The notes beneath the pieces are model-generated. The model ran no database searches, was not told where the DNA came from, and worked only from the letters and a program-made list of their open reading frames with translations. DNA of 64,000 nucleotides from Klebsormidium nitens (Eukaryota > Plantae > Klebsormidiophyceae). The stretch spans positions 62,001-126,000 of the forward strand of contig DF237061.1 in assembly GCA_000708835.1 (NCBI GenBank), in the 5' to 3' direction. The position numbers were made by a program, and so were the translations under genes. Positions 403 to 21,321 of the stretch are shown here, in pieces; positions within the stretch are counted from its first letter, which is position 1, and every line of letters starts with the position of its first letter.

Positions 403-6934
<6,532 letters not shown>

Positions 6935-8323
6935 GCTTGCTGTTGACATTGACGCTTGTGCATTATGCTAAGTTCGGAAGCATTACTTGCTGAGATTAGA
7001 TGAGAGCGTATGAGGAGACTGTATTCGGATCCGTCCGGATGACATGGACACAGCTTCTTGCACATTGAGGGCGAACATTCTCGTCTTCGAATCCTCACAA
7101 TTATGAGAATATTCATAATAGATACTCACTTACAATTGGAGGCGTTGCCTGCCACGATCTGTTTTCTCGAAGCAAAGGTCGATAGCTATGCTTTGCGAAG
7201 CTAGTGCAGCATGTATCTATCGTTACGTGTCAGGCATCGTGCAAACAATAACAATCCAAGCGACCAACCGGCCATGGTCTAGCCGTCACAGCATGCCGGC
7301 CAATGAACTGGATAGGGCCGGGCCGTTGCATCGCATCATGCAAATCATTCAAAGACCTGTTAACATCACTGAATTCATGTGTATATGTCGAGCTAGTAGC
7401 TGCATGCTTGCATGATGCGTCGACAGATGATTCCTTTCTCGCGCGACTATATAGCTTCAACAATGCATGATGATCCGGTTGAACAAGCTCAATCGACCGT
7501 TTGACTGACCGCGGGCGGTCAGCGCCACCATGCCATGATGATCCATTCTGGCAACCACGCGGCGCCGTGGGGACAATAAGGATCAAGTGAGCTGAGGTGT
7601 CACGTGTTGACTTCACTTCAACTACTGGCGTATGCATGTGGACCATGCGGGCGGCAATTCAGTGACTGCTCCCCGTGCTCACCATGGCGCTTCAAGCTGG
7701 CCTGCAACGCCCGCTATAAGCTTGCCGCCAATTTGGAATCATTGAACTCGATTGTCTTTGAAACCACGAGCTGCAGTCCACCAAAGATCCGAAAGGCACG
7801 GCTGTCAAGCTCAATTTGAGGAAGCCTCCTCTCCAAGTAGTACCGATCTGTCTCCCATGCTGTTTGGTCTCCCCCTGCAAGGAGCTCAAAACCTTAAATT
7901 GGCGATTACGAACCCTAACCTTTGATGTGTTCATTTCTTGTACGTAGACATCAACGCATGCAACCGATGGAACGATTGGTCGACCGTACTAAACAGAGAC
8001 TCGTTTCATGTTTAGGTATTAGACGCCCCGGGCCTTCAAACGCAAACCCCAAACCCCAAACCCCCGCGCCGGCTTTACATGTAGTCACGTGGCCGTCGGA
8101 CGCGACTCCCCGGGCCGCGCTCGAGCTGACAACGCGCAGCCGCCTGGGACACTCGTGTACGTGAAACGCCAATGTTTCGGAGGCTGATAGAGAACCAACT
8201 TTTGAATCAACCAGTTGAACAAACGGCAGACAACGGTCAGCAAGCTAGGTACAGTAGAACACTTGCTTCCCATTTGGACGCTGCTCAATTGCCACAAAGG
8301 GCCCGGGTCTTTCTCGAGTCCTC

Positions 8324-9008
8324 ATGGACTTGACGGCGCCTCACAAGCCCGCCATACAGCACCTCGAAACTAGGATTGAAAGGCTACAGGACAAGACAAA
8401 TCTCAGCCCGAGACTCAACGCTAAACAACTTCAAACAGGACCGCGAGCACGATAATGAGGTAGAGATCTTCCAAGCAGACTTCATCAACCCCCTCTGCAG
8501 CAGTATATACTCTCTGCGGGAGAAAATACTTTTGGGGAGCCCCTCAGATGTTCAGAGGAGTTCAAAGCAGCTAATCGGAAAGTCAACCACTTGAACAAGT
8601 GGCTAAAACTTGGCGCGCGAAGAAGCATTTTGAGCTAGACCCGTCTTTAAGGGATCTTTTGAAGTTTTGTACAGGGGGGAGTCGCCCCAGGCACAGCATG
8701 CGCTCGAGCATTATCTGCGTACCTCCCTTTTGCCAGCTGTCGTTGTGCTGAAGAGAAGTCTGAGAGAGATTGACAGCTGTCTGGGCGTGTTGGAGAACAA
8801 ACCACAGCTTACGGAGCTGCGAAGACGCCGTTCTGCAAAGCTTACACAGACTGCGTATAAGGCGCACCTTGAACGCCGGGCACGTGCCGCAACGGTGATC
8901 CAGAGGCGCTTCTTGGAGTTCCTGTTCCGGCCGGGGGGGCAGCTCGCGCGGAAGGCGGTCAAGCGTTTGCGGGAAGCTGCAAAGGAGGGGAGCTCGTTAG
9001 AGCCGTAA
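8324..9008 (+). pseudogene. Possible broken or unresolved ORF ending in an IQ-like motif (AATVIQRRFLEFLFRPGG)
   Basis: Protein-like segments occur in different frames: 8324 MDLTAPHKPAIQHLETRIERLQDK, ~8550 EEFKAANRKVNHLNKWLKLG, and 8667-9008 ending ERRARAATVIQRRFLEFLFRPGGQLARKAVKRL. I found no clean splice model. Confidence 0.3.
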
Positions 9009-10427
9009 AACATAAGCGCTTATTGCAGCTTGGAGGGCCTATAATATGATGGGATAGGACAAATCAAGAGTCATAATTAATCATAACAGCTGCAGATGGA
9101 TTTCCAATAGAGGTAACCAACTTTCGGTCATAAACTCAGTGTGGGCTGCATGTGCAAACGCTAGAGCCTTAATATTCACCGGCATATGACCATCCATTCG
9201 GACTGGCGGGATACCTTCCGACGCCTGCGTGAGTAAAAGTAAAGGAATGACGTATCCCCGTGTCATGAAGTCTCGAATGAACCTTAGCTTGCTAGACGGC
9301 TTCAGCTGGCATTTGATCCTTACCACGCACTAGGACAAGTTGTATCAGATTAAAGGTTCCGCCCATGTGGACTTGAGCCGTTTCACGGTGCAGCATGACA
9401 CCCTACAAATCGGATATTCCAGACGAACAAAGCTCTTGCATTAATATCAGCATGCTGTAGCAATGCTTAGGACGAAGCTAGGTCCTTTTTGCACTGCTCG
9501 TACTATACAGATTGCAATATCGTCATGATATTATGTCCTGACATCACATGTTTCTGAAAAGTCAAAGCCTCAAGCCCCAGCTCGTGGTCTCCGTAATACA
9601 AGTCACTATACACCACCCTCCTGGTTTTCGTATGCATGCATGCTGTTCAATCTAGCAGAAACTTGCATAGAACTGAGCGGACATTTCAGTATAGATTCGA
9701 GCCAGAAGCCTTGAAGAAGAAAATTATAATAAGCTAAACGGACCGCTTTCTAGGAAGACAGTTCCAGGGAAACAGCTACTAGAACGGGAAAATGCTTTAT
9801 AGTAAGAGTAGCCTGCCAAGTTGTCCCCTTTAACTTCCAACCATCAAGAATATGTACCAGGTCGTTTGCTTGAAACGATCAAACGTTTCCTTAATACATA
9901 CGTAGTCTGTTCTCCTTATGCAGGCCTTCTTTAAGGATTAAACATGAAGAAAGCTATTCGAATCCACTATACCCAAGGTTGTTGGCTCACAGATTCTCTG
10001 ATTTTTCGGCATCACAACTACCTTGCAAGCTTTGGCAAAGGCGAACTCAAGCTCCTCAACTCTACCCCTTTCCGGATCCAACTTAGACTCATATGTTTGT
10101 TCTTTCTAACATAAAAGAAGCTCAAACTGGACTGCAAAATGAGCCTCAAGACTCGTTGGGACGTCATCGAATTCGACGTGCTTCTTATTCTCAAGATGGC
10201 CGTCCCTTGAGTCTTCGCATCTGTGACAGCTTAGAAATCACAAATCCTATCAACACCTGAGCCCTCGAAACTCTCTGAAGAGGGCGGTTTTTGCAAAGGC
10301 TCTAGGCCTTTCAGCCAAAACAAAAAGACCGGACTCTGGTGGGTTTTGCGCGCGACGTTCTGGGGCGACTGCCAAGCCGGCGGTTCGGGCAGTCGGTCGC
10401 CGTTTGAGGTAGGCCCCCTCCGTCGCT

Positions 10428-13400
10428 TCAAGGGGTACAGTTGGTGGGGTAACCGATGCACGTCGGATTGCCATCGCTCAGGAAGGCGCCGCAAGTGGAC
10501 GGACTGCATCAAACAAGTCAATTCAAATTGGAATTGAAGTAAGCAGGGACTCGGAAGATCGAGATTGAATTCACATACCATGTATGGCAAGTCGGTTGAA
10601 CGAACAAGGTCATTCTTTTGACGGAGGTTTCTTGAGGGCTTCGCAATATGAAGCGGGTTTTCGAAACGAGCGTTCCTTTTGGCCGCTCCTCTCCTCCGCT
10701 ACCAGAATCCAGGTTTTAAGGTGAACGTCCTAAATCGCAACCGGTTCTTCATTCACCTGACTTTCAAAGCCACAAATCTTTCACAATCCGGTCGCCAGTC
10801 TTACCAGCAGATGAAGAAATTGCCCCCGGAATCGTAGCAAGGGTTTGCGAGATTTGCGTTGCACGATGCTCCGTCACTGGATTTTGGATAAGGGTATGTG
10901 GTGCACATTCCCCCGGGGGGGCCTGAAGTGCCCGCCGGAGGCGAAGGCGTCGTAACCGGGGGGTTAGTAACCGGTGGGTTTGTGCCCGGGGAACTCGTAA
11001 CCGGGGGGTTTGTGGCCGGGGGGTTGCCCGCACAGTTGGTGGTGTCCCCCTGGCAAGTCGCGCTGTTCCCGTCGGCGCCGAAGGGGCCGCACGCAGTGGG
11101 GCTGCAAACGGAAACTCGCTCACGTCAGCGGGTCCTCATCTCTTATGATGATTTTGGAATAGGCACGCCGTCTTGAATCTCGCAATGGCCGACGAAATCA
11201 AAAGATAGCTTTTTTCCTCATTTCGCCCTCATTTTTATGACATGCCCAGAAATTCGTATCGGTGACTGTGCTGGTGTCTTCGCTTGCCGACTGCCAGATA
11301 GATACCGCACTTTTTGGGTTTGATGCAAAGTAGACGTGAAATGCGTCGTCGGCTTTCGGTGCTTTCCTCGTCGGCCGTCCCTGTCAGTGATAAAGAAACA
11401 ATCTTTGCTTTGAGAGTCACCTCGAGAGCGGACGTGGATCTCTTTACGTCCTTTCCCTCGACGGACAATGTGTCCAACAAGAAAAGCTGGCGATTTTGAG
11501 CGTTGTAATGCTGTTCTCGAGGTCCTCTGTTGGTTCGGTCTGCTTAAGATGCTTAGGTTGGCAAAATTTGTGGTCAAGTTTCAGCCGTGACTCTTGTTGC
11601 GATAATGCCCAGGACAGCTGATCTCGTCTCACGTTCACTCGTCGCCCGGCCTTCTGTAACACGAAAACTCCAACTTCTTACCAGCAAATAAGATTCGCGC
11701 CATTTGAGTCGTAGCACGGATTCACAGCCCCCGCGCCGCAGGCGCTTCCTGCAGCTAGCTTTGGACGGCTCGCGCCGCAAGGCGGGTTAGGGCCCGGGTT
11801 TGCGGGCGCAGGGGTCGGGTTAGGACCCGGGTTTGTGGGCGCGGGGGTAGGGTTAGGACCCGGGTTTGTGGGCGCGGGGGTGGGGTTAGGCGGAGCTGAA
11901 GTTGGAGTAGGGGGAGCGGGTGTCGGGTTAGGGGAACAAACCCCGGAGACACCGACGCAAGTGGGCGTTCCGTCCGATGCGAAGGGTCCGCAGGTCCCGG
12001 GGCTGCGGAAAACGGAAAGGATGTGAGAGTTTGAGTCTCTGTTTTGTTGGGAATCCGGAACCTTTCATGGTAGAAGGGAGAAAGCGAGGAAGGGGTTGTG
12101 GGCGATGGACTAAAGCCTTGCTTTAGAATTTTGCGGGACATGAGAAGATTGTGAGGGAGCCTGAAAATGAGATCAAAAACGAGCCATGATGGAGAGGATG
12201 CCACCAACAATATGCGCAGTTTCAGGGCATTCTCTATGACCAAGTCAAACGGTGAGAGGCACACACAAAATTCCCTGTTGGAAAGGGATCTAACGACGAG
12301 GCTAAAACGCAATGTGACAGCGTTTTGTGGCAAACAAGCAAAACGGAGGGAATACTAATTTCCAGCGCGTAAGTTTGGCAACTCGACTGACGAGACTACG
12401 CTTTCCCCTCCGCAGGAAGCAAGACTTCGTTCAGTCTTGAATGTCAATCCTTGCTCGACGCTAGGACCATATGATGAATACGGACATCAGGAAGAGTTAG
12501 TGAGAACCCACCAGCAAGTCAACTTTGACCCGTCACTTGCATAGCACGGATTGGGTGAGCCGCCGCTGCAAGTGCTCCCGGGGGATAGAATTGGCGGGCC
12601 GCAGGAGGGGGGTCCTGGAGTTGGGGACGGCGTTTTGGCCGGGGGGGCCGGCGTATTTGCGGGCGGGGCCGGCGTATCTGTGCACGTGCCGGGATAGCCT
12701 TGGCAGATGGGGCTGTAGCCGTCGGTGTCAAGGCCGCCGCACGCGCTTGGACTGCACAGCATTGACACCGCTTTTTAATGCTGGCGAAAGTTGTGGGTGC
12801 GTGTGTGTGCTTTGCTTGTCGCTGAAAGTTCGAGGTCGATCTAGATTGCAAGTTGCAAAGAGGACAAAGGAGGAAAAATGAGGGCCCATCGTTATTTGAG
12901 ACCACCTGAGATTTGCTGACTGAACCTATAAGGCCCATTGATCGCCACGCACCTTATCAGAACTGAAATCTTAAGCCGCTTCGGCGATCTCAGACATTGG
13001 AAATCGACGTGGCACAAGTTTTAGTTTTGAGGGAATAATCCCGTCCATGATGTGCGTCAGACTTATTTCATGTGCGTCAATCTCATTCAACTATGAGGAG
13101 GAGGTACTGAAGCGGGATAGCATGGACAGAGGTCCGAAACTTAAAAACATACGTTCCACACTCTACAAAACTCCGCATGAAGACGACGAAATCCACAGGC
13201 ATTGTTCCAGGCTCAAATAACTAGACCCAGAAATCCGAACTCCGGACTCGAGAGCAGAATTTCAGAGGAACCCAACAAGCCGAGGAGATAATAGCAAGCC
13301 AGAGCTGGAACGTTCGACTCCAAGAGAATCCCATATCAAATACAATAGAAAGAGGTTTTTGACACTCTCACCAGCAAATGGCCAACGACCCGGGCCCGCC

Positions 13401-16400
13401 TACCGTACCTGGCTGATTCTTCTGCGCATTCACCCAACAAATCTGCTCCGCTAACAGCACAATACAGATCAGATTTATCCTAAAGGTCCTCACCAGCAGA
13501 TGGCGAACGACCCGGGCCCGTCCGGCGAGTTGCACGGCTGCGGCATGGAAGGCGCCACGTCACCGCACTTCGTCAAGTACGGATACTTGAGGTACGGGTA
13601 GCTGGGACTGCACCCACTTATCGGGGGGGAAGAGCCAGGGTTGTAACTCCCGGACTGAATTGTAAGCACCAGGAGGACCGATTCGTGGGGTTGGAGGGAG
13701 AAGGGGCCGATGGAACCGGAGTACGTACCGGGCAGGTTTTGGTGCTGCAAGAGGAACGGAAGCAATGATTTGAGCTTTACCCGGCGCCTGTACACCTTTC
13801 TCTAATGGGGTTCAAACGTGCGGTGGCTAGAACGCGACGGATGAAACGAATTCGACCACGAAATGCAACGCTGTAATCTGCTGCAAGGCATATTGACCTA
13901 CTTCGAGCTGCAGAAGAGTTTTCGTCAGCCTTTCGCTCGTTGTTTTCCCCTTCGAAATTGGGCGTGATGGACACTTCTGAAATTGGGGATGATCAGCGTG
14001 AAGAGTAAAGGTGGAGCAATCAGAGGAAGTTGAGTCAAGCATTCATGAGGGTTCCTCGTAGTTGCCTTGACCAGACTCGATCTGTCACCATCTCAGAACC
14101 GTGTGTCAGTACACTGAATTCCTGCCGTAGTGATTGAAAATGATGCCTCTGAACGGCCTTTAGGCTCGATACCTCCAGTCTAGCTTTTTCTTTGTCGTCA
14201 TTTCAGACGACTGAATTCCGCAATCGCAGCGTGCCTCACACGGAACTCATCTCAACCCCTAAACCTGTCTTAACCCAACTTAAACTATCTTGACGCATCT
14301 TTTGGTCTTACCGCCCACAAGTCGCGTGCAGTGACGACAGTCCCTGGCGTCAGCCCGATGACAGTCCACGTGGCCGAAAAGCTGTCGGAGGAGCCGCCGT
14401 TCTCGTTAACCAGCGCCACAACCACCCGGTTACCGCTCAACGGGCCGGCCCAGATTTGGCGCTTGCCCGCGTAGTAAGTGCGGGACGCCTGAACCCCTAG
14501 AGAGTCTGTGCGGAACGAAGCAAAGACAGCTTTGGTCATATGATGTCAGTCAGTTCTAGAACGACTTCTTGGAAGTCTACGAAGATTGTTCAGGGGTAGT
14601 AAGCTTGACAAGGTCGTCACCAGTAACCGTGCCGATTCTGACAGGGGTAATTAAAATGATCCCGCCGAAACTTCAGGAACTGGGAAAGTCTAAATGTAAT
14701 ATCAACAGAGTCCTGTTAGAGCTCGACGTGAGGACAAAGTCATGGAAACAGGAATGGAGATGCAACAAGGATTGGAATAACGGAATCGCAATCTGTCTAC
14801 TGAATGGTTCGACCGCGAATCTGCAAACGATTGCTCACATCAAAAGCGAGGTCACACAGTCTGTTTATGACGCCAAAAACATTTCGAGCTTCGCCGCACT
14901 CACCTTGATTCACGGCGATCACTTCGGAGTTTGTGAGGATAGCCTGCCGCGTGGCGTCGATTGCAGCCAACTGGATGCTTATCATTAAAGGCGCCTGTAA
15001 GCGAAAAGTCGGATCCTCGGTTGTCTAGTCGTGAGCCAGACTAGACTGCAGCGTTCTTAAGACTCAGCGGCATTTCCAGACGACAGTTCATCCTGGGACG
15101 GGATGACTATCAGCCAGCCCCCAAACCTTCCAGCGAACTTAGCGCAGTGCGAGTAGCTCAATCGGTTTTAAATTTGGTCTCTGAAGCAATCTCCCAACAG
15201 AAAAGAGCTTTTGCAGTGCTTTCTCGATCTAATCCTTCATAACAATGGCATATGAAGACTGGGTTACGCTTTTGGGTTACCTTCATAATCGCCCAGATGC
15301 TCATTTGCGTCCTCTCGCCGACGTAGTCGGGGCTCCCGTCTGAGAGGCCCAGGCCGCCAACCACGAGATAATCGGGATCTGCAGTTTGAACAAAAGGGTT
15401 TGTCACAATCGAGTCCCTTTTCTCGTTGCTTTCGAGATTGAAGGTCTTGTGAATGGAGCGAGCTACGAAGGCATGGTGCATTGGAATCAGGCGCAAACTC
15501 ACTCCTCGTCGAAAACCCGAACCATGCAACCCTATTGCAGATGCTACGAGCAACACTGCTCGAGAAAGTCCCTTCAGTTTGGCATGGTTGTGGCTTGTTC
15601 TGGTCAGTTCCAAGCTTTTGACTTCAACGAAAAGCACATTCTCAAAAAGGGCGCGCGTGGCATTGGCCAACTCAATCACACGCGTACGCCTGAAGCAATA
15701 TATTGCTGCTCTTAAGTTGGCAAAGAGGGGTCAGTTTGGCCAATTGAAGGCTGATAGCACTCTCTTCGAGCCCGGCTTCCAAGCATTCTCGTGAAGTTTC
15801 GGTACGTACCGTTCCAGCCTTGACTTGGCCCGGCACACTGCGGGTACATGTTGTTCTGGTCCATGGTCTCAAAGACCCGGTTGATGTCGCCGTAAATGTC
15901 GTAGAACGTGCGCCAGCTGTTGGCGACCGAACCTCTCTGCGCAGGTTTGGGGGAACATTTGTCGATTCAGCAGAACGGAGAAGACCCGTTGAACATCCAG
16001 CCGTGCACAAGTTTCCTTTCTCTCAGTCTTCTACGTTGAGAGGACACTAGTGCCAGAATTCTGCCGCAAACTTGACGCAAAACACTTCCTTAGAAGGGAC
16101 AACTGTGAAACCACGGCGATGAATGGTCTGGACGCTTGAAGACCTTGGAGCCGCTGAGCCCGGCACAGGAAAGACGTTTCAGCTCTCTACTGATCGCAGC
16201 ACGGGATCTCATCGAAAAACATCTCAATTCTGGATCCTACTGTCTTATCATCGGTGATTCCCGGGTGAACTGCAGCCCAAATCTAAGTCGCCCACAAACT
16301 TTTTTGGCAAGTACGAACTATTCTTGTGAAACATGTCCGAACGGCACCAGTTGTTAGGGATTCGGTGGTTTAAGTCCGCCCGGGGGGCGAGCCACGTGCA

Positions 16401-19400
16401 TCGGATCAGTCGACACCTATTAATGACGCGTCGCCACAAAGGCACATGGGGCAAAGGTGGTCGGTCTTTCATCGACTCACGTCGCACGTGCTGGTTGGAT
16501 AGCCCCAGTACCCGGTTGAGTAGTAGATTGGGCGGCTCAGCGCCGCCAGTGCGTCTCGCATGATTTCGAACCTGCAAGAGAATCACAAAAATTGCGGCTT
16601 AGAAGATAAGAATCAAGTTGATATGTCAAACTGGGTCAGAGGCATGAAGGCGGGTGGTCAAACAAATAAAGACGTACAAAAGGAAGAAGCGATTTCAAGC
16701 CGCCTGTTTTTCGGAGCATATCATTGGGCCAGCGTCGAAACGCTGCATCCAACTTTGTTTGATTTGCTCGACAATCGCTTTCAAAGCTGCCCAGCTTTTG
16801 GAATGCGGAAGGGGAGGCTAAAAGGGTAAACCTTCATTAAGCGAAGTAGTCAACTACCAAACAGCTCCCGAAGTGCCCAACCAGCGAGACTCCTTCGGCA
16901 CGACGCGGACCGTCTTTGGGTGGCAGCAACAAAGGAACGAGGCAGAGTCGAAGTTGATGGAAGGAAAGACTGAAAAAATCGATCCTGTTACCATCATGGA
17001 TTGATCCCTGAATCAATCATGATAAGCGCAAGTTACACAACCTTCAGTCAGGATGCAGGTCCAGAATGGGTACGAGTGCGGAGCGGGTGAAAGTTTTGAC
17101 TTCAGCAGTTCAGTGCTGGCTTAATATTCGTAGTAAATCGAAAGTAATCATAAGTAGAGAGTGCTTTTACCGTGTCCTGATGGGCGCGACGTCTCCGCTC
17201 GCGCACGAGTCGTACTTGAGGTAGTCCACGGTAGCCGCCTGCAGGTAGCGCGCGTCGCGCGCCTCAAAGCCGAGGGATCCCTCGCGGCCCGCACACGTCA
17301 GCTGCCTGAAGGGTCAGACGAAAACGCAAACTTGAGTGCCTTACGTTTCCAGCTATAATCTTGACATAAACCAATTCTTATTTCAGAAAAATAAGGGGAC
17401 AAAAGGGGTGAATTATGCTTTGTAGGTCGATCAAGTTCTGCACCGAAGAAGAAAAAGTTGGAACGAAGTAGATTGAACGGCTCCATGTGGCTGCAGAAGG
17501 CGTGAAACGGCTGATAGGAAGTTGCTTGGCATTGTGATTCTGGTTCGTTGAAGATCTTCTCTACGAGGAGCGGTCGCGCTTCAGAATATTTTTGGGATCA
17601 TCTATAGCTCTTTAGAAGTCCAGTTCTGACTCCAAAGTATGTCGACCGCCAAAGAGTCAACGACTGCGGGTGATAGAGAATCAGTCAACTGCCTGGAAGC
17701 AATGAAGCGTACCCAGTATACGGCCAAAAATGCAGCAACTCATGGCCGTATGATCAACCGACCAGTCGTAGCCACGTCGGCTTCGATTTTTGCCAGAGTT
17801 CTGGAAGCGCAGGAAAGACTCGAAACCGCAAATTTTCAGACAGACTGCGGCTTGAGGGACTGGAGACCCTTGTCTTTTAGATTAGTTACATTATCAAATC
17901 ATATTTACCGGGACGAATAGGTTTAGTGTGGCTCTTTAAGGTGGGCACAGGTGCGGAGCAGGTATTGTTTGGGGTTGGGTTTCCAGTTTTTGCTTCGTTC
18001 TTATTACAACTCGAGCTTATCAGAAGTCAGTGTCAAGAGAATCATCTAGAGACCGTGTCTCACCCTGCGTCGAGGTAGAGCCCGAACTTGAGCCCTTTGC
18101 CGTGGATGTAGTTTCCAAGGGACAGCATCCCAGAAGGAAAGACGGACGGATCGTGTTGCAAGTCTCCGCTGGGGCTTCGGCCGACGGTGTTCCAGCCATC
18201 GTCTGTAAGAGAGGGAAATGCATTTCGAGCTTCCCTTCCAGAATAGCATCATTACATAAGATGCATACTTTGCTGAAGTAACAGAGTCAGCTTGGACATA
18301 CGAAACGCGTCACGAAAGTGTTCCAGCCCTCGTTTGTAGAAGAGGCAAACGCTCTCTTTCCGAAAGGTTTAGGTACAGCCAGTTTGAGATGAGTCAGTGT
18401 AATGGAAACGGGTGGCGTTAGTTGGGGGGTTGGGATGGGTCCGGGAGCGCGCAAGTTTCAGTCGTGGGTTTTCGTTTATTGCGTCCTCCCGGCTCCGTTT
18501 GTGTACCTCGACCTGGCTCAAAGTCAACCTAGAATCGAGACTTCATAAAAGGCCTTTGGAGGACCTCATCAAATAATAATGATTAATTAATCAAAGGACT
18601 TCATAAAAGGCCTTCTGAATCATGTCTGAATAGCATCGTCGAACAAGGAGCAAAGCCTGCTGAAGAGCCAGAGTCTTCACAGAATACGAATCCTGTCAGA
18701 ACAAGGAAGACGTACATGTAAACTTCGCACAACTTTTTTCCACGTTTTATTGCGGCACGCGTTCACCGATCATCAAACCCTCCAGTGAGATTTACCTTCG
18801 AGTCAATAAAGACGAGTCTCCCAGCAAGAGTAAACTCAAAAGGCTCTATTTTGAAAGCTCTATGTGTATTGCAAAAGAAAGAGGCGTCTAGCACAAACGA
18901 TTCGCCGATGTTTGATGATTAAGGGCACCTTTCAGTCGTTCCAAGCCGATGATATGAGTGGCGGGCTGTTCAATTATGTGGCAGCTCACCTATGTTGATG
19001 TAGACATAACCGGCATCTCTCAGACCGAGGGCTACAACTTGGTCCGCTGCAAACATGATGGTTGTTCAGTGAAAAGCGAGGTAACTGAGCAGAGATTTAC
19101 TCAGATAATCAAAGGTACTACCGTGAAAGTTGGTGTTGATCAATTGGTCCTGCTACAGCAGCTTTTTGGGCTCGAATGTATCGTGCACATGCATCTTTAG
19201 GTTCCGTTTCATGCCTTCTTTTCGTACGATTCTCTTTGATTAGAGCGTCCCGCAATCAGCTTCTCAAAGCGCTGCAGAAAAGCATGGCCAAATTCCAGGG
19301 CCGGTCGAGACCGACTTTGGAACCCATCAGTTTCGTAGAGGTCACCAGCAATTGGGGAGTCTTCCTTCATTCGACAGGCCTCGGGATTTTGATGAATGAG

Positions 19401-21321
19401 TTGGTTGCAAAAGCTGACTTCTTCCTCCACGGATTCTGAACAACACTCTTGCTTGTACCGTCGATTTCGGGGACATACGTGGAGCTTTGGCAATATGCCA
19501 AAGAAAACCCCTTCCCAAGAGACGACATCACACGACAACGGAGTGCCGTCAGCTTTTTGAATGCAGTCTCGAAAGATTTTGAGACCTTCTCGCTCGTGTG
19601 AAGCATCAGTAATTTGATGAACACTCCAGCATCTCGCACAGGACCGTCATCATTTTGATCTTTCTCACAAGGTACCAAGGGTCGTCAGTAGTGCTTTCAT
19701 TGCCTTACCAGCTTGTTCAAGGTCTTGCTCGTTGATGACTTCCACTGTACTTTTCCTGGATTTGAAGTCCATTGATCTGGCAGACGCTCGACTACCTCAA
19801 AAGAACCAGAAAGTTTTCTCTTCAAAATGTCAAAGTCGTCAGTCAGTGGTAATGTCATCATCTTACCAGCTTGTTTGACTTTTGCCTCGTTGATGTCGGT
19901 ACCGTATGCGTTCCAAGTACTCCATCCCATCCGGGGGGTGGCATTCAGCCCGTTCGCCAGCATATTTCTCCGGAGGGGATCCCCCTCAGAAGTAACGTTC
20001 AGCTACATCAGAGGAAAGCTGCTCGTTGTGTTTCTCTGGACAATCATTGGGTGCGTAAAAGAGGCGAGAGATCTTCTGAAGCACAGACTAAACACTAGTG
20101 GTCCCCTACAGAACTAACTCCGCCCGTTTGATGGGTGTTGACATCCAAAGTTTCAGCTTGGTAAACACATCTTGATTTCAAGCCTGCAAAAGGGCCGCCT
20201 CTGCTCAAGGAATTTTGTATCTGAGGAGCACCGAATGTAGGAAAAGCTTTCTTCTCTCAGCAGCCTCCTCAGACAGCCACATCAATGATAATGTAACAAG
20301 CTTCTGAGCTTCACAAAAGATGGAGAGTCCTTACGTTTGCAGCATTGGAAGTCCCTCCCACAACGTCCACTGCACACAAAAGAGGGACTTTTGGGGACAG
20401 CTAGAGATAGGTATCAGGTTTTACCCTTGGGTAAGATGACATACATAGAGGTGGGTAGATGAATGTGCAAAGCTTTCTGAGGGAGTGCTGCCCAAAAGAT
20501 CGTTAATTTGTCATTTGGCACCCAGGTATTTTGACTTGCCAAGCGGCCCGAGAATCCAGCGGTAAACACCAAGGAGCTCGTTAGACAGGGCGGTTGCAAT
20601 ATAACACGAGTGGTATAGCAGCTTCAAGGACTGGGAACCTGACGTATAATCAGACTCATCTGGTTTCAGCAGTACCAGTGGATGATCCAGGAACATTGAG
20701 GATGCTCGCTCACAGGATTCTTCATCAAGAAGTCAAGGACCCCAAACTCAATCTTTCCAAGCAAACTTGAGCATAAGAGGAGCACACAAATCAATCAGGA
20801 AAAATGTGATTGTGGATATGCTAGAATTGTGTCCTAATAGACAGAAACTCACATCAGAAGACTATTTAAAAGCAGCCACTCAGGACATGAAGGGGTTCTT
20901 GATCTTTCAGTCCCCTGACAACATTGACTTACATGGTGCATCAGCAATGAACGTCAGGGATCGGGCCACATTCAGGCATTCTGAAAGAGAAGCTGAGACT
21001 TTCCACAGAGAGAGTGCATAATCACATGTTGAATGTGCAAGAGCTTTGTGTGTGCAATTTGGGTTTTTGTGTGAGCTTCTTGCAGTATCATTCTGTCCTT
21101 GATTCAAAAGCACAGCGACCTGAAGGGAGGCTTGCATTCAATCACCATTCAGAAAGGGGCCCATATGGATAGGAGATAGAAAGAACACACAAAGCAGTGA
21201 TCTCACCTTCAAGCACTTTTCTGTTCCGGATATTCTCAGAGGTTGCCTGTACAAAGCTTGAATCTTTGGCCAGCAGCATGAGACAGACGAGGATCGCAGC
21301 AAGAGACAAGCGTCCTGCCAT
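10428..21321 (-). CDS. GH27 glycoside hydrolase (alpha-galactosidase-like), predicted secreted, with four C-terminal 8-Cys modules
   Basis: Exons (minus): 21207-21321 (signal peptide MAGRLSLAAILVCLMLLA), 20119-20183 (tentative), 19867-20002, 18990-19046, 18064-18202, 17171-17305, 16481-16571, 15810-15936, 15281-15378, 14904-14994, 14312-14505, 13494-13744, 12512-12751, 11682-12002, 10805-11101, 10428-10503. GH27 motifs: LANGLNATPRMGWSTWN, YINIDDGW, FPSGM, GLKFGLYLDAG, VDYLKYDSC (nucleophile Asp), NSWRTFYDI (acid/base Asp), WNDPDYLVVG, WAIMKAPL, EVIAVNQDSLG, RDLWA. The 5' exon structure above 20002 is uncertain. Confidence 0.9.
11784..11890 (-). repeat. Coding minisatellite, 33-bp unit x3, encoding a PNPTPAPTNPG-type Pro/Thr linker
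   Basis: gggttagg anchors at 11784, 11817, 11850 and 11883, inside exon 11682-12002. Confidence 0.9.
13367..13398 (-). repeat. Intronic copy of the 3' end and donor of GH27 exon 13494-13744
   Basis: ctcaccagcaaatggccaacgacccgggcccg versus real ctcaccagcagatggcgaacgacccgggcccg (30/32); offset 122 bp. Confidence 0.9.
19520..19750 (-). repeat. One clear and one faint intronic copy of the 3' end and donor of GH27 exon 19867-20002
   Basis: gtcgtcagt...cttaccagcttgtt...ctcgttgatg at 19681-19740 versus real 19835-19900 (offset 158 bp); fainter copy near 19520-19570. Confidence 0.75.

Follow-up and report, generated by a model that had tools for sequence, protein, structure and literature searches.

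A plant-type GH27 protein of Klebsormidium nitens with four tandem copies of an unrecognised eight-cysteine module

Introduction

Klebsormidium is a key model for the adaptation of green algae to land, and its wall chemistry is unlike that of land plants. We analysed a stretch of 64,000 nucleotides from Klebsormidium nitens (GenBank assembly GCA_000708835.1, contig DF237061.1, positions 62,001 to 126,000 of the forward strand), here called the window. A minus-strand gene in the window encodes a protein of the glycoside hydrolase family GH27 that carries four tandem modules at its C-terminal end, each 53–63 amino acids long and each with eight Cys. Judged by its sequence, the protein appears to be a modular secreted glycosidase with small disulfide modules attached by linkers. 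The module is an unrecognised orphan, detected so far in one genus, Klebsormidium. It is the module that is new; the gene and the protein are already in public databases.

We propose that the four modules form a multivalent wall anchor on a secreted GH27 enzyme that acts on alpha-galactose of the wall, and we give this proposal about an even chance of being right. The weaker part of it is that the ligand would be a glycan.

The eight-cysteine modules

The modules were read from the translation of five exons. In the protein (P0001) M1 occupies residues 451–513, M2 residues 540–592, M3 residues 645–700 and M4 residues 743–798. Every module has three Cys before a CC doublet and three after it, with the spacing C-x10-14-C-x7-10-C-x9-11-CC-x3-C-x10-11-C-x6-C. 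Identity between modules is 39–53%. A hidden Markov model (HMM) of the module matched only the five exons in the 64-kb window (next best E-value 0.29).

An earlier note on this DNA, made without database searches, had listed the four module sequences, and translating the five minus-strand exons reproduced them exactly. The eight Cys of each module, their spacing and the linkers of Pro, Thr and Asn are also as it described. Its consensus further placed a Pro after the CC doublet. This holds in the window gene, but an orthologue (described below) has CCS in place of one CCP, so the Pro is not invariant.

Each module is divided between two exons of the minus strand. Exon E1 (13494..13744) encodes the final strands of the beta-sandwich of the enzyme, a short Ser/Pro linker and the N-terminal half of M1, up to Cys1–4 and the TG of Cys5. 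Exon E2 (12512..12751) encodes the C-terminal half of M1, a Pro/Thr linker of 26 amino acids and the N-terminal half of M2. Exon E3 (11682..12002) follows the same plan with the C-terminal half of M2, a Pro/Thr/Asn linker of 52 amino acids and the N-terminal half of M3, as does E4 (10805..11101) with the C-terminal half of M3, a linker of 42 amino acids and the N-terminal half of M4. The coding part of E5 (10428..10503) holds the C-terminal half of M4, two further residues and the stop codon TGA at 10430–10428. All four introns between these exons are in phase 2, and their donor sites come after the TG of the fifth Cys codon (TG|Y), splitting the CC doublet.

The linkers of 26, 52 and 42 amino acids consist of P, T, S, A, N and G residues to 90–100%. 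Two of them contain tandem repeats: a unit of 33 nt present three times in E3 (11784–11890), encoding PNPTPAPTNPG, and a unit of 15 nt present five times in E4 (10935–11025), encoding TNPPV-like units. No dibasic or other obvious processing site was found in the linkers. There are only two aromatic residues in M2 and two in M3, and Trp occurs in none of the modules.

This composition bears on a different explanation of the tail, namely that it integrates the enzyme into the wall through protein contacts. The modules would then form intermolecular disulfides or protein–protein contacts, and the linkers would be Pro-rich rods within the network of hydroxyproline-rich glycoproteins (HRGPs), as in chimeric HRGPs and arabinogalactan proteins. 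The linkers are indeed HRGP-like, being long, variable in length and rich in Pro, Thr, Ala and Ser, and aromatic residues are few in the modules. Green-algal walls contain HRGPs that bear Cys-rich globular domains. PAC-domain proteins of the green lineage likewise combine Pro-rich regions with Cys domains (PMC7177597). On the other side, an even number (eight) of invariant Cys and a compact predicted hairpin fold argue for intramolecular disulfides, and Pfam shows neither PAC/Ole e 1 nor any HRGP domain in the protein. We consider integration through protein contacts unlikely.

Transcript evidence

Transcript contigs from four public runs (two studies, one species label) were examined over the region 10300–13900. 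Their splice joints are 10503|10805, 11101|11682, 12002|12512 and 12751|13494 (read on the plus strand as CT..AC). What the contigs leave out is precisely the four predicted introns, so they must derive from spliced RNA. All four introns have GT..AG ends: intron 1 at 12752..13493 (742 nt), intron 2 at 12003..12511 (509 nt, within the CC doublet of M2), intron 3 at 11102..11681 (580 nt, within that of M3) and intron 4 at 10504..10804 (301 nt, within that of M4). The four TG|Y junctions predicted by the earlier note were thus all seen in spliced contigs.

One contig links E1, E2 and E3, and another links E3, E4 and E5 and runs on to 10300. The contigs are unbroken from 10503 to 10300, which places the 3' untranslated region at 10300..10427, at least to 10300. 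Breaks in the contigs are confined to the 33-nt repeat of the E3 linker and are an assembly effect. At its other end (13744) E1 is joined to the beta-sandwich exon upstream of it, at 14312; where contigs break off at 13745, their further letters are those of the window from 14313 on, in the exon whose end reads ...ARDLWA.

The sequence alone had left room for transcripts that end at an in-frame stop at 13490, with the downstream exons as separate small genes. This stop (13490–13492) lies in intron 1. Retention of intron 1 was not seen in the contigs of the four runs, so the stop is intronic and unused in them. The contigs read into the downstream exons and chain them to the GH27 exons, which rules out separate small genes.

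Intron 1 also holds a 32-nt ghost copy of the 3' end of E1 with its splice donor (13367–13398 versus 13489–13520, 94% identical). It lies 122 nt into the intron and is used by no transcript contig.

The GH27 core

The whole coding region runs from 21321 to 10428 on the minus strand (10428..21321) and comprises 16 coding exons for 800 amino acids. The model comes from exact mapping of the public Klebsormidium nitens protein GAQ82465.1 (A0A1Y1HV11), named ‘alpha-galactosidase’, which matches the spliced model letter for letter. The tail of the public entry carries no annotation. A literature search by accession numbers and by run identifier found no paper.

Nine exons (14312..20002) encode residues 51–406, which comprise the GH27 catalytic (beta/alpha)8 barrel and most of the C-terminal beta-sandwich, as delimited by Pfam and PDB matches. 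The Pfam profile Melibiase_2 (PF16499) matches residues 72–342 over its full length (profile 1–284 of 284, E-value 1.2e-60), and Melibiase_C (PF17801) matches residues 355–433 (5.6e-17). These GH27 domains are the sole Pfam matches of the full protein at E ≤ 10. The closest PDB sequences are the plant alpha-galactosidases 6F4C (Nicotiana benthamiana, 8e-91) and 1UAS (rice, 2e-81). Arabinopyranosidases score far lower than alpha-galactosidases among the PDB matches. The phmmer alignments with 6F4C and 1UAS show an identical Asp at two positions, one in YLKYD(S/N)C and the other in SWRT..DI. We take the Asp in LKYDxC to be the nucleophile and the Asp in WRTxxDI to be the acid/base. These matches bear out the earlier assignment to GH27 and characterise the protein as plant-type and of the alpha-galactosidase type.

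The barrel and the beta-sandwich of the two land-plant enzymes align end to end with the Klebsormidium protein, with the Asp of the catalytic motifs conserved. Both land-plant proteins stop two residues past the sandwich, that is, past the position aligned to residue 434, in keeping with the earlier statement that typical land-plant GH27 enzymes end there. Since 6F4C and 1UAS end where the tail starts, the tail of about 365 residues, with its linkers and four Cys modules, is an addition.

A secreted GH27 enzyme of Streptomyces, PDB 3A21 (614 amino acids), likewise has an extra C-terminal part after its GH27 part, and matches over the catalytic part with an E-value of 1e-44. The extra part is presumably a ricin-type CBM13, a family of carbohydrate-binding modules (CBMs). 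The Klebsormidium module is unlike ricin/CBM13 or any Pfam family and consists of about 55 amino acids, present in four copies with Pro-rich linkers.

Exon 1 (21208..21321, minus strand; residues 1–38) encodes an N-terminus that, read directly, resembles a signal peptide: a basic residue, a hydrophobic stretch and then VQA|T. We infer from this that the protein is secreted. Residues 27–64, some 40 residues, form an extension that separates the signal-peptide-like start from the part that aligns with plant GH27. Mapping of the protein spreads this stretch over exon 1, the second exon (20335–20370, minus strand) and the first of the nine GH27 exons (19868–20002, minus strand). It has no Pfam match and could be a propeptide.

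Searches for relatives

The main search ran HMMER against 1.84 billion representative proteins with a threshold of E ≤ 0.001. Its query, alignment A4, was built from the exons that join a C-terminal half, a linker and an N-terminal half; the N-terminal half of M1 was left out, as MAFFT put it in the wrong place in the exon alignment. Only two proteins passed: P0001 itself (4e-91) and P0002 (225 amino acids, 4.5e-20). The libraries consist of predicted proteins, in which modules split by introns in unannotated algal genomes are invisible, and among 1.84 billion entries a lone divergent module must score about 40 bits to pass.

Pfam gave no family at E ≤ 10 for the whole modules, the whole tail or P0002. 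This includes the profiles of hevein/CBM18 (PF00187), CBM1 (PF00734), granulin (PF00396), the eight-cysteine motif (8CM) and PAC/Ole e 1, none of which matched the modules or the tail. Separate exon pieces gave nothing in Pfam either; each exon holds half-modules only, which makes this result little informative. NCBIfam gave no match. The four-module profile was also compared with all PDB sequences, where the best match was a three-finger pheromone of a salamander (E-value 0.26, 20 residues). We dismissed it as chance.

Word searches were also run. With the exon alignment there was no match, the results being swamped by Pro-rich candidates, and with the whole-module alignment none of 10 candidates scored. 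With the tail of P0001 the search returned only P0001 and P0003, a bacterial GH5 protein. P0003 was rejected as a relative, as its match is confined to the Pro/Thr linker and the protein lacks a Cys module. Metagenomes and the genomes of bacteria and archaea were scanned by pattern, which gave bare pattern matches and no relatives.

The module was claimed to be unrecognised and to be neither hevein/CBM18 nor CBM1. Both statements agree with the absence of a match in Pfam, in NCBIfam and among PDB sequences, with the lack of a fold match and, for the second, with the different Cys pattern. A confident match to a known family, named in advance as the result that would overturn the claim, did not appear in Pfam, NCBIfam or the PDB. 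Two of the checks suggested at the time, a profile search with the module and Foldseek, returned only P0001 with the open reading frame (ORF) of its orthologue, and no solved fold.

Orthologue and selective constraint

A genomic contig of run SRR23617307 (L001), from another species, is syntenic with the window and carries the same GH27 exons and four module exons, with 73–96% DNA identity to the exons of the window. The orthologue has four modules, 32 of 32 Cys and the same TG|Y intron positions.

Between the window gene and L001 the ratio of nonsynonymous to synonymous substitution rates (dN/dS) is 0.30 in the modules, at a dS of 0.33 (224 codons), 0.41 in the linkers and 0.40 in the end of the beta-sandwich. 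Nearly all indel residues (43 of 44) fall in the linkers, and the two repeat-bearing linkers are 24 and 15 amino acids longer in L001. Since the linkers change length by units of 33 nt and 15 nt, they evolve by repeat slippage. Rates of change at the codon level thus characterise the modules as under purifying selection, moderate and not extreme, and the linkers as length-tolerant spacers. The identity between modules, the HMM matches confined to the module exons of the window, the 32 kept Cys and the end point of land-plant GH27 together show that the modules are more than a chance pattern.

Constraint of this kind also bears on whether the modules bind anything. They could instead make the enzyme more stable or more soluble, serve only as spacers or be set free as small, separate Cys-rich peptides of the inhibitor or antimicrobial type. 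A constraint that is only moderate, and a module found on one gene only, would suit such roles, and polyproteins of small Cys-rich peptides occur in plants and animals. Linkers that lack dibasic or obvious processing sites and resemble glycosylated spacers speak against release, and four copies with all Cys kept in both species would be costly for a mere spacer. A tail with no binding role thus seems to us quite improbable.

P0002 corresponds to positions 4834–5511 of L001. It is a prokaryote-style ORF call that begins within one intron of the orthologue, runs through its exon E3 and stops in the intron that follows. We rejected it as a genuine protein of 225 amino acids, since it is the single exon E3 read from intron to intron.

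L001 also contains a second, partial and stop-containing copy of the end of the GH27 exon for KYDSC...IRTR, at 175–222 versus 3–98 of the same contig. This copy, in the other species, is a ghost exon fragment.

Predicted structure

AlphaFold2 models were made for M3 and M4, each from a four-sequence alignment, with mean confidence (pLDDT) of 74.8 and 73.4. The two models agree in four short strands, the first around Cys3, the second ahead of the CC doublet, the third following Cys6 and the fourth at Cys7. The module is accordingly modelled as all-beta. In the sense of CAZy, a CBM is a discrete fold contiguous with a carbohydrate-active enzyme; the modules sit on a GH27 enzyme, and the reproduction of the strand pattern in two models suggests such a fold.

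Foldseek against the PDB and a full VIA scan gave no solved-fold match for the M3 and M4 models; fold comparison is weak for models of 56 residues. Searches of the ESM Atlas by shape gave as the best result a granulin cluster (TM-score 0.45, 46 of 56 residues), which we regard as a lead. Shape searches gave TM-scores of at most 0.46 for M4 and at most 0.27 for M1–M2, and feature searches of the ESM Atlas returned no usable match.

The granulin lead raises the question of whether the module belongs, as a far-diverged member, to one of the known families of small disulfide-rich domains (hevein/CBM18-like, granulin-like hairpin stack or knottin-like), lying below the sensitivity of the searches and having the role of that family. 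Granulin (PF00396) is built of stacked short beta-hairpins, as the module may be too, and both have CC doublets and the motif CCP. However, the TM-score is below 0.5, granulin has 12 Cys in another pattern versus eight per Klebsormidium module, and there is no sequence match. More generally, neither any whole module nor the tail has a Pfam match at E ≤ 10, the best result of the PDB profile search is an unrelated protein, and both fold searches are blank for both models. The arrangement of three Cys, CC and three Cys is also unlike what we take to be the patterns of hevein, granulin, CBM1 and 8CM. We regard membership of a known family as improbable.

PAC-domain proteins and the hybrid Pro-rich proteins of plant walls, which contain 8CM, share with the Klebsormidium tail a Pro-rich region joined to a domain of conserved Cys. 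8CM has the pattern C-C-CC-CXC-C-C and is helical, whereas CXC is missing from the Klebsormidium module, whose predicted structure is all-beta.

Proposed function

A catalytic domain with linker-attached binding modules is a common layout of secreted glycosidases, and the proposal that the modules bind carbohydrate is drawn from this architecture. Fungal CBM1 and hevein/CBM18 have a like layout, with a small disulfide module of 35–60 amino acids on a glycosylated linker rich in Pro, Thr and Ser, sometimes in tandem. CBM1 has about 36 amino acids and four Cys, and hevein has a conserved Ser and three aromatic residues. The eight Cys of the Klebsormidium module are arranged as 3 + CC + 3, as opposed to four Cys in CBM1 and, as we take the patterns to be, 2 + CC + 4 in hevein. 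The binding face rich in Trp and Tyr that marks CBM1 and hevein is absent in M2 and M3.

On the reading we prefer, Klebsormidium extended a secreted, plant-type GH27 enzyme with a flexible and probably O-glycosylated tail that bears the four modules. Each module would fold as a small hairpin unit locked by disulfides. In wall proteins of the green lineage such Pro-rich stretches undergo hydroxylation and O-glycosylation, and the linkers would be spacers modified in this way. Together the four modules would attach to a wall constituent of the alga itself (most likely a glycan), and multivalent binding would retain the enzyme in the wall. There it may trim the alpha-galactose end groups of the Klebsormidium wall heteroxylan.

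A matching substrate is at hand in the wall of Klebsormidium fluitans. Its ‘pectic’ fraction makes up 30–50% of the wall residue and is a uronic-acid-free heteroxylan (PMC11688530). This heteroxylan bears terminal alpha-D-Gal, and a plant alpha-galactosidase frees Gal from it (PMC11688530).

Several observations weigh against an anchor that binds glycan. The modules show no likeness, in sequence or fold, to any proven carbohydrate-binding module, and the models that describe them come from a four-sequence alignment with only moderate confidence. Small CBMs such as CBM1 and CBM18 depend on an exposed aromatic face, and M2 and M3 offer only two aromatic residues each, with Trp in no module. A general wall-binder would be expected on several enzymes; among the 1.84 billion proteins a single protein and its orthologue were the only carriers detected. 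The linkers exceed the modules only modestly in dN/dS.

A bolder extension is that the module is a new fold that arose in the Klebsormidiophyceae, founding a new CBM family for an alpha-galactosylated, uronic-acid-free heteroxylan and forming one of several lineage-specific wall tethers. We hold this as a tentative possibility, on the doubtful side.

A constrained, four-copy domain on a wall-remodelling enzyme points to lineage-specific ways of holding enzymes in a wall that is exposed. Were the module to bind a glycan, it would be the first of a new CBM family and could serve as a probe for an algal polymer that is poorly understood. In practice the gain is modest, as the gene is already public, the module is known so far from one gene in one genus and its function is inferred.

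Neighbouring gene

A P-type cation ATPase gene lies on the plus strand at about 1700–9000 of the window, convergent to the alpha-galactosidase gene. This convergent neighbour is kept in L001 at 8255–15511, where the DNA is 75–96% identical and the gene calls carry the Pfam domains Cation_ATPase_C, Hydrolase and Cation_ATPase.

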